Positions 41,449 through 54,351 of a DNA stretch of 64,000 nucleotides are shown here, one piece after another. The stretch's first letter is position 1; each line of letters starts with the position of its first letter. Below the pieces are notes generated by a model. It was given only the letters and a program-made list of their open reading frames with translations. It was not told the DNA's origin and ran no database searches. A program made the position numbers and the translations under genes. The stretch is from Salpingoeca rosetta (lineage: Eukaryota; Protista; Choanoflagellata): the NCBI GenBank assembly GCA_033442325.1, contig JAWQFM010000031.1, forward strand, positions 257,745 to 321,744. The letters are read 5' to 3'.

Positions 41449-44400
41449 ATGATGAAGTGGCCGGTTGTGCGATCGAGCTTGCTTGATGAGCTTGGGTTAT
41501 CTGTCTATCACACATCCTTTGCCTAGTGCACCCCATCTCACCCGATTTCTCGATATCACGACATGTTCGTTTTGCAGGCTGCCTTCTGCAAGTTCAAGAC
41601 AAAGTCGGCGTGCCACAAGGCTGCTTGTGGGTTCATACACCATGATGAGGTGAGTGCTTTGTCTGTCTCTCTGTGTGTGTGTGTGTATGTGTGTGTGTAG
41701 GTGCTTGTGTTTGTCTATGAGTATTTGTGTGCCCTCCCTCTCGCCACACACACACACACTTCTCTCTATCTGTCTCTCTGTCTCTGTCTGTCTATCTCTG
41801 TCTGTGTGTCTCTGTCTCTGTCTGTCTGTGTCTGTCTCTTTCTCTCTCTCTGTCACTCTTTCTCTCTCTGTCACTCTCTCTCTCTCTCTGTCACTCTCTC
41901 TCTCTCTCTCTCTCTCTCTCTCTCTCTCTCTCTCTCTCTCCATCACATCCTCACCAAGCACCAACTATTTGTCCCATCCAACCAAAACATCACGCCGAAG
42001 GTTGATGAAGACTGTGACCTCGGCCACTTGTGCAAGCGGAGGTATTGTAAGCGTCGGCACCCACCACCGGTAAGTGTGGTCTTTCTCCTTCAGAAGCGTG
42101 AACAAAACGATGCTTGAGCGAGAAACTGACATCCTCCCACACGCACGCATACACACACGCTCATGCACACGTACGCTCACACGCGCACGCACGCACACGC
42201 GCATGCACACACACACACACACACACGCACGCAGATCTGCAAGCTCAGGCACATGTGCGAAAAGCGGGGTTGTTTTTTCTTGCATCCGATGGTCGACCTT
42301 CGGGACAGACCCAAGTGCTGGTTCTTGCAACAGGCTGGCGCACCATTATTGCAAGCAATCATTACGAACTTGACCGGAAACAACAGTATCACTACAGTTG
42401 CTGATGCACGCAGGCAGCAAGTTCATATTCGCGGCGGTACGGCGGAAGAGCGCGTCAAGGCTGCTGACTTGTGCAAAACAGTTTTCAACCTCGTATCATG
42501 CGTAAGATTTCCATTCCCTGGCCGCTCAAAGGAGGACCTCAAACGCAATCAGGCACCACTCCAGCTCGCAAAGCAGAATGACATCGCACTCTTCTACAGT
42601 GATGAGGAGGTCGTCATGGTGTACTGGGATGCAGTGCGGCGCCCACCTGAGGAGGTGCTGGCTGAAGTGAAGGAGCTGCTCATCGCGTCATCAGCCGAAC
42701 AGCGCGACCGTGAACACGTCCAAATCCGAGATGCACCCAAGAGCTTGTTTTTGCGCGACGCCGGTGCTTCTTGGCTTAGAGTGACCGTTGCAGCCGCTGC
42801 TCCCGACGTGGCTGTGTCCGTTGACCCACGAACTCAGCGTGTATTCATCAACGGAGGTACAGCTGCTGCTCGGAAACGCGCTGCTCAGGCTTGCAAAACA
42901 TTCGTCCGGCAGCTGGTCAAGTCTGAAGATGTGTTGCTGCCTGGCCTCTCCAAGGCCGACATCAAGCGCAATCAAGCTGCCAATGACTGTGCGAAGCAGT
43001 ATGACGTGACGCTGTTCGTCGGTGAGGCCAAGGCAACGCTCGTGTATTGCTCCACAAATCAGCGGTCTCTGGGTGCCCTGCCACGCATCAAGGAACTGCT
43101 GCAAACCCCAACTCAGCACCCGCCTCAGCACCCAGCAATTGTGACCCAAACTGTTACAGTCCCGAACGAACGCGCCCTTATCCCCGTGATTAAGGCTGTG
43201 CGACCCGCTCTCCCTGAGTATGTCTCCACGCAATTTCCCCAGACCAAGCTCAACATTGAGTTTCGGCACAGCGACCTCCCAGTTATGACGTTGAGCGGGC
43301 CCAGCACGCAAGTGGGCAGAGCTGCGGCAGCAATCACGGCGTTTTTAAAGGGTGTGGTCGTTCACAAGACGAGCGCCCCACACCCAGGTCCCACGGCGCA
43401 AGCTGCTCTGGAGAGGTTGCTGAAGGCAAAAGTCTCTCAGCTCAACACCAGATTCAAGCAAGGCAATCACAAGTCTGTGCAGCACAAGGGGTCGCCAGGC
43501 AAGAGCAAGAAGTCGCCACGTGTCTTGATTGCGTTCAACGTCGCTGAAACGAGAGTCATGCATTCGCTTCTGCGCGTGCACTTGACGGGCCCAACCGAAG
43601 CAAGCAAGGACCTCGAGCGGCTTTCCAAGACCGTGCAAGACTTTATTCATGACTTCACCTCCCAAACGATCTCAGCACCCAGCAAAGAACTGTATAACGC
43701 GCTCAAACCCGTCTTTCTCAAGCACAGCGTGGCCGCGCAATGGGTCGGCGACGACTGCAGCATTGTGCTGTCAGGAGCCAAGCAAAGCGTGAATACGGCC
43801 AGGCAACTCCTTCAACGTGACAATGGCAGCACTGGAACGCCTGGCGGACAGGCAAGTTGTGCTACGTCCCTTCCACCCACTCTTGGCAGCGGCGTATCTT
43901 CAAGCCCAACAACACGCAAACTCCTTGCGTCTACTAGCATCGTTGCCAGTGCTCTTCTGCTTCCCAAGAATGTTGGCCGCCTGAAGAGTTTGCTCGAGGA
44001 TGCGATTGGGGCCAATGCTGGAGTGCGGGCGGAGCCGTGCTTGCAGAATCAAGAGCCTTCGCGCGAGGTGGCCAGGCTGGTTGGCACAAAGGATGTGGTG
44101 GTGCCAGCACACAAGATGGCCGAGCAGAAGCTGCTGCAGCTGGAGCAAGACATGCTCACGGAGAACATCGAGCTCGACACGGCCGAGCTTGGCGTGTTCA
44201 AACGCCAGGAGGGGCGTGGCCTGATGAGGAGCGCACGTGACATGGGCGTCGTTGTGCTGAGCCCACGTGCCGCGCACAAGATGCTCGAGGCAGATATTCA
44301 CCAAGCATTATCACAGTGCACGGCAAAGGCAACCCGACCAGTCCACGTGCTGACAGCGAATATCTCCAGCTCTTCAAGGCCGGCTCAAGTTGACGTGGTG

Positions 44401-54100: not shown

Positions 54101-54351
54101 AGCTCATGGAATACAGCGACCGTGGCTACGCCTACGTGTGCCCTGACGACCCGACGAAACGACAGGTGTTCATTGCACGCGTGGCGGCTGGGAAGGTTGA
54201 GGAGCGCGGAAGCAACTGCGACCAGTCCATCAAGCACCAGTCTCCAGGGTTCGATTCTGTTGGGGGCATGGTCACGGCCACTCACAAGGCCATCATCATC
54301 TACGACTTGCAGCAGGCCTACCCAGAGTACCTGATCACGTACAGCGCCTGA
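48148..54351 (+). CDS. Macro-PARP paralog B: 5 CCCH zinc fingers - KSP-rich segments - KH-like repeats - macrodomain - WWE - PARP catalytic domain
   Basis: Phase-0 exons 48148-48165, 48411-48482, 48645-48713, 48923-48997, 49259-49327, 49561-49761, 49990-50058, then one 4-kb exon 50284-54351 (the 1353-aa ORF). Same macro/WWE/PARP motifs as paralog A, with an intact frame. Confidence 0.9.

Follow-up and report, generated by a model that had tools for sequence, protein, structure and literature searches.

Predicted PARP14-like ADP-ribosyltransferases with Nab2-type CCCH fingers are encoded in tandem in the choanoflagellate Salpingoeca rosetta

What kind of protein is encoded by two neighbouring genes of Salpingoeca rosetta in which CCCH zinc fingers, KH-like modules, a macrodomain, a WWE and a PARP domain are joined in one chain? 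The genes, PTSG_09729 (gene 1) and PTSG_09730 (gene 2), both named hypothetical protein at NCBI, lie in a stretch of 64,000 nucleotides that was analysed as a whole (hereafter the window; positions 257,745 to 321,744 of the forward strand of contig JAWQFM010000031.1, assembly GCA_033442325.1). A preliminary description, made from the sequence alone, had correctly attributed this DNA to a probable choanoflagellate and had regarded the genes as a hybrid of ZAP and PARP14. Our analysis makes it likely that the locus consists of two old tandem paralogues of a PARP14-like mono-ADP-ribosyltransferase, in which the body plan of PARP14 is combined with a head of Nab2-type CCCH fingers. Judged by sequence, the proteins would be PARP14-like with added fingers, and not a ZAP hybrid by descent: the hybrid character holds for domain content, but not for ancestry, since the macrodomain, the WWE domain and the KH array point to PARP14 and the fingers appear to be of Nab2 type.

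Some of the background to this locus is published. Macro, RRM, WWE and PARP domains were reported in the clade-3 PARPs of choanoflagellates by Perina et al. (2014), who named the ancestral macro-PARP 'PARP14-like' and noted its tendency to tandem duplication (PMC4245714), and Citarelli et al. (2010) described CCCH-WWE-PARP proteins as confined to animals (PMC2964712). A 2026 review of PARP14 mentions neither choanoflagellates nor a CCCH form (PMC13224862). No searchable paper cites PTSG_09729 or PTSG_09730, and none describes CCCH fingers with this body, which agrees with the earlier view of the genes as a candidate undescribed system. The genes themselves were already public; what is new here is a pre-metazoan KH array that appears collinear with that of PARP14, the CCCH head, the H-Y-A catalytic triad and a correction of PTSG_09729.

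Domain content and affinity to PARP14

The open frame at 50290-54351 is 100% identical to PTSG_09730 (1456 aa; UniRef name 'Poly [ADP-ribose] polymerase'), and PTSG_09729 (1615 aa in the NCBI model) lies directly upstream of it. Macro, WWE and PARP domains were recognised by Pfam in both genes (gene 2 values in Table 1; PARP E 2e-12 to 9e-18 across the two). Each chain combines CCCH fingers, KH-like modules, one macrodomain, WWE and PARP, as had been claimed, and the four motifs that the preliminary description quoted were all found in the translations.

The macrodomain is nearest to macrodomain 1 (MD1) of PARP14. Its best solved relatives are PARP14 MD1-MD2 (3vfq, 7e-28), PARP14 MD1 (3q6z, 6e-23) and PARP9 MD1 (8e-20), and the motifs NAAN, GG and SGVFG are kept, including the Phe of SGVFG, mutation of which strongly lowers the hydrolase activity of PARP14 MD1 (PMC10470015). 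When the WWE block was compared with the PARP14 WWE block by hhalign, the value was 93.7%. In the ADP-ribosyltransferase (ART, or PARP) domain, alignment to PARP15 puts A1437 opposite L659, the third triad residue, and the catalytic Glu is absent; by its sequence, the H-Y-A triad is of the mono-transferase type. The best full-length matches of the ART domain are vertebrate PARP14 proteins.

The middle region was less easily recognised. About seven KH-like motifs had been proposed for it; KH-like repeats are present, but their number is about eight in gene 2 (an in-line run of six, a seventh apparently divided by Macro and WWE, and an eighth ahead of ART) and about ten in gene 1, where an additional pair of KH-like modules is duplicated internally (40% identity, E 2e-18). 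At E <= 10 no convincing KH, RRM or PARP14-specific KH match was returned by Pfam, the values for KH_Vigilin and KH_1 being E 0.03 and 0.05. A homologue search with the whole protein was swamped by low-complexity words and gave only the query back, and searches restricted to regions were informative. When aa 160-760 were searched exhaustively with phmmer against 1.84 billion representatives, nothing came back but the query and one relative, P0002 (E 8e-6), and within S. rosetta the KH-like region is common to the two tandem genes only.

The predicted structure of this region can be described more fully. An AlphaFold (AF2) model of aa 165-735, made from an alignment of three rows, has a mean predicted local distance difference test score (pLDDT) of 62, most modules lying at 70-89. 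In this model of gene 2, DSSP delimits six beta-alpha(alpha)-beta-beta-alpha units in succession, at approximately aa 171-228, 229-291, 295-363, 365-516, 518-583 and 589-671. In a VIA-align comparison with 48,161 PDB representatives, the top matches of this model were type I KH domains (Z 7-9.2, of which the range 7-9 is what the tool calls 'middling'), with a root-mean-square deviation (rmsd) of about 2 Å over 60-70 residues. The best were MEX-3C KH2 (Z 9.2, rmsd 2.5 Å over 69 residues), Nova-2 KH3 (Z 8.7) and PCBP1 KH1 (Z 8.5, rmsd 1.9 Å over 65 residues), and KH domains of vigilin, IGF2BP3, Krr1 and KSRP were also found. Foldseek returned KH tandems of Krr1/Pno1, GLD-3, KHNYN, FMRP and N4BP1 together with secretin N-domains, which have the same fold as the KH-type matches. 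The nearest Atlas clusters were vigilin-like multi-KH proteins, one with KH_PARP14_1/2, and one DTX-type ligase cluster. A second AF2 model, of aa 1145-1270 (pLDDT 67), again had type I KH domains at the top in VIA-align (Z 6-7.3) and KH_1 clusters in the Atlas. The argument for a KH fold is thus one of consistent neighbours and repeated topology, not of any single score, and it suggests that the middle region has the type I KH topology beta-alpha-alpha-beta-beta-alpha. The KH-like character given to this region earlier is therefore borne out by the models and their structural matches, but not by Pfam.

Is the order of these modules that of PARP14? BLASTP aligns aa 591-953 collinearly with residues 684-994 of a fish PARP14, a stretch that comprises KH6, KH7 as far as its split, and macrodomain 1 (by the Pfam bounds of a sloth PARP14). 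The KH regions alone were matched to PARP14 by hhalign with a probability of 68-72% (P 3-5e-5), in one alignment of 331 columns running from KH2 to KH7a, and in the whole-protein profile alignment aa 256-960 were paired with PARP14 421-984. The module count of gene 2 (six in line, one apparently split, one last) equals that of human PARP14 (PMC10450202). Module 7 appears to have been split by insertion, its two halves being recognised from sequence pattern and secondary structure. The support for collinearity of the KH array with PARP14 is moderate, not strong; at the level of sequence, every part of the proteins except the fingers seems to point to PARP14.

With vertebrate PARP14 (ARTD8/BAL2), then, the S. 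rosetta proteins share an in-line array of KH-like modules, an apparently split one, a further one, a macrodomain of the MD1 hydrolase type, WWE and a C-terminal mono-ART without the catalytic Glu; tandem gene duplication is also typical of the family (PMC4245714). In contrast, vertebrate PARP14 has three RRMs where S. rosetta has CCCH fingers (no RRM match was found in the S. rosetta protein by Pfam even at E <= 10), three macrodomains instead of one, a WWE domain after KH8 and not between the macrodomain and the last KH-like modules, and a triad H-Y-L instead of H-Y-A. Furthermore, no Pfam KH_PARP14 model is significant in S. rosetta. PARP14-like proteins of the invertebrate type, namely those on eukaryotic contigs from ENA or deposited with metagenomes (P0042/52/57/64, L008-L012) and the sponge, placozoan and lancelet proteins of Perina et al. 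(2014), run in like manner from a KH-like region through Macro, WWE and a second KH-like region to ART, mostly within a single long exon, and likewise carry WWE before the last KH-like modules. They differ in that WWE is present twice and the N-terminus carries either RRMs or nothing.

The matches of a metagenome scan were mostly bacterial macrodomains, together with four eukaryotic PARP14-like loci. No CCCH motif was found in the eukaryotic PARP14-like proteins from ENA or in the four eukaryotic metagenome-deposited contigs examined, and two of these four (L009, L011) have RRM-bearing open reading frames (ORFs) just upstream. Outside S. rosetta, the closest relative, and the only detectable one of the KH-like region, is a Logan contig (L005; run SRR14727191; AT-rich, 38% GC). 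Its parts follow one another as in the tandem pair (KH-like, Macro, WWE, KH-like, ART), its triad is likewise H-Y-A, and it begins with the first KH-like module, a stop in the same frame lying just upstream. An in-frame TAA and two changes of frame interrupt it in three places, and its weight as evidence is accordingly small. Elsewhere in S. rosetta, a third macro-PARP (G000:C25:291448-297408; locus L006 949-6909, minus strand) is encoded by a single frame of 1987 aa with Macro and PARP. It has no WWE domain and no CCCH motif, and it is unrelated to the tandem pair outside Macro and PARP. An open frame of 1830 aa on contig C4 (L007) has a macrodomain like that of L006 and no PARP domain.

CCCH fingers, transcription and history of the gene pair

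Three fingers are annotated in gene 1 and four in gene 2 (perhaps five with a candidate exon). The spacing C-x5-C-x4-C-x3-H applies to the seven annotated fingers and the candidate, with x7 in the first finger of each gene. The best Pfam family is zf-CCCH_2 (Nab2-type), at E 2e-4 and 22.2 bits, below the curated cut-off of 25.8. In a PDB sequence search (E <= 10), Nab2 fingers 5-7 matched at E 2e-3; no ZAP or PARP12 chain was found, and the only other matches were two chance ones to rotavirus VP7 (E ~2). With Nab2/ZC3H14 the fingers share the spacing, a tandem arrangement about 23 residues apart and a His-Pro past the last ligand, and three S. rosetta fingers align with Nab2 fingers 5-7; Nab2 itself is different in being a poly(A)-binding nuclear protein without enzymatic domains. 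On this evidence the fingers appear to be Nab2-type, not ZAP/PARP12-like. PARP12, PARP13 (ZAP) and PARP7 do combine CCCH fingers, WWE and PARP in one chain and have an H-Y-hydrophobic ART (except the inactive ZAP), but they lack a macrodomain and a KH array, and their fingers are of another spacing and sequence family. The likeness to them lies in domain content and need not imply descent.

Each finger lies in an exon of its own, 69-75 nt long and in phase 0, in gene 1 exons 2-3 and gene 2 exons 2-5, whereas the third finger of gene 1 opens the long exon. Because of the Nab2 match, these phase-0 mini-exons, the different counts in the two paralogues and the relatives without fingers, the fingers look like a lineage-specific addition by exon accretion. 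No other protein was found that combines CCCH fingers with a PARP14-like body.

It had been claimed that fingers in small exons are spliced to the long exon. The exon bounds of both genes were set by matching the NCBI proteins PTSG_09729 and PTSG_09730 to the window (Table 1); the NCBI models already join the finger exons to the long exon, and the splice sites of the gene 2 model are canonical, with one GC-AG intron. Two stranded RNA-seq runs and two contig sets were then aligned to 41350-47000. The reads of gene 1 are almost all in the orientation of a plus-strand transcript, and depth is zero in the intron bin 41728-41916. At 41999 the loose read ends hold the closing bases of exon 2, and at 42069 the opening bases of exon 4; a 2119-nt X6 contig spans exons 1, 2 and 4, and the 75 nt that it has between the last two fit exon 3. 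In gene 1 the exons with the fingers are spliced to the long exon, and the possibility that the fingers are not joined to the enzyme thus falls away for this gene. Other loose ends, at 46025 and 46516, carry gene 2 sequence, which indicates that gene 2 is transcribed as well. The preliminary description erred in the start of the locus, which it put at 41449: the ATGATG at 41450 lies inside intron 1, and the true start codon is that of exon 1 in Table 1. In about one fifth of the RNA reads and in one contig, an extra G is seen at 46975, just past the gene 1 stop codon; it may be a length polymorphism of the 3' untranslated region or a reference error.

In gene 1 as assembled, Macro, WWE and PARP are split across two overlapping ORFs. 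The cause is a 416-bp tandem duplication inside the macrodomain, which consists of 350 identical bases followed by a 66-bp junction repeating a short upstream stretch. Since 416 cannot be divided by three, the reading frame changes at 45055, and the NCBI model of PTSG_09729 keeps its frame only through an invented intron and a repeated half-macrodomain. However, contigs of runs X1 (probably DNA) and X6 both skip exactly 416 bases, the latter without mismatch, and RNA depth is 2-5.5 in the junction bin and 27-43 in the adjacent bins. When one copy is removed, gene 1 becomes a single open frame of 1491 aa. We regard the duplication as a probable artefact of assembly, or as no more than a variant of the strain, and gene 1 as intact; the repeated half-macrodomain of PTSG_09729 (1615 aa) is probably artefactual.

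A sliding-window comparison of the paralogues gave a mosaic. Over the fingers, the KH array and the ART domain the synonymous sites have reached saturation, and the duplication that gave rise to the pair is therefore old. In Macro-WWE (aa 776-1075) and in the last KH-like modules (aa 1160-1280) the two sequences are virtually the same, synonymous differences being near zero; these tracts were placed at 52600-53500 and 53750-54110 of the window in gene 2 and at 44400-45800 and 46040-46400 in gene 1. This indicates recent gene conversion between old tandem duplicates. The ratio of nonsynonymous to synonymous substitution (dN/dS) in the diverged ART domain is 0.1-0.4, which suggests that both copies are under purifying selection; both are probably functional.

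Table 1. Position of the features in the window, with the evidence for each
Feature	Coordinates	Strand	Remarks
Gene 1 (PTSG_09729) exon 1	41380..41403	+	Start codon, MPRTHADK; joint 41401->41576 (GT..AG, cut +2) in 17 reads and one X6 contig
Gene 1 exon 2	41578..41649	+	72 nt, phase 0; CCCH finger 1 (C-x7-C-x4-C-x3-H); reads tie it to exon 1, loose ends at 41999 to exon 3
Gene 1 exon 3	42001..42069	+	69 nt, phase 0; CCCH finger 2; loose end at 42069 continues into exon 4 letters
Gene 1 exon 4	42235..46961	+	CCCH finger 3, ~10 KH-like modules, Macro, WWE, PARP, stop codon; Pfam, and stranded RNA coverage along all of the exon
Gene 1 domains (reference coordinates)	Macro ~44437-45290, WWE 45528-45773, PARP 46422-46880	+	Pfam
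Second copy of the 416-bp tandem duplication, inside the gene 1 macrodomain	45055..45470	+	44639-44988 identical to 45055-45404 (350 bases)
Gene 2 (PTSG_09730) exon 1	48148..48165	+	Start codon, MPPHRK
Gene 2 exon 2	48411..48482	+	CCCH finger 1; next intron has a GC donor (GCAAGT) at 48483
Gene 2 exon 3	48645..48713	+	CCCH finger 2
Gene 2 exon 4	48923..48997	+	CCCH finger 3
Gene 2 exon 5	49259..49327	+	CCCH finger 4
Candidate exon outside the NCBI model	49561..49761	+	201 nt, in frame, AG/GT sites; low-complexity linker copying the start of exon 6 (repeat D11)
Candidate exon outside the NCBI model	49990..50058	+	69 nt, in frame, AG/GT sites; putative fifth CCCH finger
Gene 2 exon 6	50284..54351	+	Linker, KH-like array, Macro, WWE, KH-like modules, ART, stop codon
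Gene 2 KH-like modules 1-6	50491..51993 (P0001 aa 171-671)	+	AF2, VIA-align; module 4 with a disordered acidic/basic insert
First half (beta-alpha-alpha-beta) of apparently split module 7	52006..52128 (aa 676-716)	+	BLASTP to the PARP14 stretch just before MD1; split inferred
Gene 2 macrodomain, PARP14-MD1 type	52285..52722	+	Pfam E 1e-22; ~35-aa insert
Gene 2 WWE domain	52960..53205	+	Pfam E 3e-6
Half module (beta-alpha, aa 1168-1196), then complete module 8 (aa 1199-1263)	53482..53769	+	AF2 model 2
Gene 2 ADP-ribosyltransferase (PARP) domain	53839..54270	+	Pfam E 2e-12; triad H1341-Y1371-A1437
Leucine-rich repeat (LRR) receptor kinase	18722-22381	-	Long exon; many leucine-rich repeats, then a tyrosine/serine-threonine kinase domain
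3'5'-cyclic nucleotide phosphodiesterase	2539-3588	+	Matching exon, E 4e-43
ABC transporter	61816-62721	-	Exon matching membrane and ATPase parts

The intron between exons 5 and 6 of gene 2 contains, about 0.7 kb upstream, a copy of the unit 'finger exon plus start of the long exon', which accounts for both candidate exons of Table 1; their use would lengthen the protein by 90 aa and bring in a fifth CCCH finger. The neighbouring genes (LRR receptor kinase, phosphodiesterase and ABC transporter) have no functional link to the pair that was apparent on inspection.

Weighing of the alternatives

Several results weigh against a PARP14-like body and must be set beside those above. The C-terminal KH-like block was matched to PARP14 KH7b-KH8 by hhalign with a probability of only 11%. 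The ART domain shows, by its sequence scores, no clear preference for PARP14 over PARP12 or PARP15 (PDB bit scores: PARP15 76, PARP12 71, PARP14 64, ZAP 38). Sequence evidence for KH domains is weak, the KH_1 value of E 0.05 being far from the cut-off, and the AF2 models come from alignments of three sequences, with mean pLDDT of 62 and 67 and VIA-align scores (Z 7-9) that are 'middling'. The split of module 7 is deduced for a region that is poorly modelled, and a two-chain fold prediction of its putative halves (aa 672-742 with aa 1160-1200) had a score of 0.06, which speaks neither for nor against the split. No human PARP is known to have alanine at the third position of the triad, so that catalytic activity is an assumption. 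Finally, no module has a GXXG in its inter-helix loop, the two G-x-x-G strings that occur lying elsewhere.

This last observation bears on what the array might do. The modules may be protein-contact modules, as in PARP9 and DTX3L: the KH-like domains of these proteins and of C-terminal PARP14, which have no GXXG, mediate protein contacts (PMC11080071). The whole array could then be a protein-protein scaffold in an ADP-ribose/ubiquitin complex, in which only the CCCH fingers would contact RNA, if anything did. Two of the modules are acidic (pI, isoelectric point, of 4.5 and 6.1) and a DTX-type E3 ligase cluster is among the Atlas neighbours, which speaks for a scaffold. However, several modules are strongly basic (pI 9-12), the KH1-KH2 and KH8-WWE-ART fragments of PARP14 bind RNA in vitro (PMC10450202), and no DTX3L-like partner was identified, though no search was aimed at one. 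A pure scaffold is a possibility to be kept in mind, but we think it somewhat unlikely.

The origin of the architecture and the number of working genes allow for other explanations too. An ancestral clade-3 PARP might have possessed both CCCH fingers and the KH/macro part, with S. rosetta keeping both and animals dividing them by domain loss, which would make the proteins a true composite of ZAP/PARP12 and PARP14 by descent. Both domain sets do stand in one chain, the ART scores are nearly equal, and Perina et al. speculate on a common RNA-granule function of CCCH and macro members of clade 3 (PMC4245714). This is nevertheless highly improbable in our view: the fingers have Nab2 spacing and match Nab2, not ZAP/PARP12, among solved structures; modular phase-0 mini-exons whose number differs between paralogues fit recent exon accretion; the nearest relative (L005) begins at its first KH-like module; the invertebrate-type relatives have RRMs or nothing N-terminally, and the third S. 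rosetta macro-PARP has no fingers. It could also be argued that gene 1 is a pseudogene, disabled by the frameshifting internal duplication that is present in the reference and bridged in the NCBI model only by an invented intron and a repeated half-macrodomain, so that one functional gene would be left. But contigs of two independent runs, one probably from DNA, lack the extra copy, RNA depth collapses at its junction, the single-copy form is one open frame, and gene 1 is transcribed, spliced and, by the dN/dS of its ART domain, constrained. It seems very unlikely that gene 1 is dead. Taken together, the results favour two old tandem paralogues with the body of PARP14 and a Nab2-type finger head.

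Possible function and significance

How might such proteins work? PARP14 is a mono-ART that also modifies phosphorylated nucleic-acid ends, its MD1 is an eraser, and fragments with its KH domains bind RNA (PMC10450202, PMC10470015). By analogy, the fingers, and possibly the basic KH-like modules, could tether the S. rosetta enzyme to single-stranded RNA or a ribonucleoprotein, where the ART domain would attach single units of ADP-ribose to proteins close by or to the phosphorylated ends of nucleic acids; the macrodomain of the same chain would remove ADP-ribose, and WWE would read an ADP-ribose derivative. The two proteins are probably mono-ADP-ribosyl writers that are tethered to RNA or ribonucleoprotein and carry their own eraser and, in WWE, a reader.

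The antiviral or RNA-surveillance role proposed in the preliminary description is a matter of pure conjecture. In its fuller form, the proteins would be effectors of a pre-metazoan nucleic-acid immunity or RNA surveillance: the choice of foreign or aberrant RNA would fall to the fingers and the KH-like array, mono-ADP-ribose placed by the ART domain on RNA ends or bound proteins would serve as the mark, and the MD1-type macrodomain in the same chain would take it off again. We regard this as unlikely. If true, it would mean that a PARP14-style defence of writer, reader and eraser is older than animals and interferon.

For the databases, the consequence is a correction, in that the repeated half-macrodomain of PTSG_09729 probably comes from a mis-assembled 416-bp duplication. 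For the family, the consequence concerns its age. Published accounts place the origin of PARP14 about 700 million years ago (PMC13224862). Its KH array was recognised only in 2023, and the present results suggest that this KH-domain layout probably predates animals. If the collinear array is real, the whole layout of six KH domains, a split KH, a last KH, an MD1-type eraser, WWE and a mono-ART would have existed in the common ancestor of choanoflagellates and animals. The N-terminal RNA-binding head would then look exchangeable, with CCCH fingers here and RRMs in animals, which argues that RNA targeting is the conserved purpose of this end of the protein. S. rosetta is genetically tractable, and so could serve for studies of PARP14-type biology in a cell that lacks interferon signalling.

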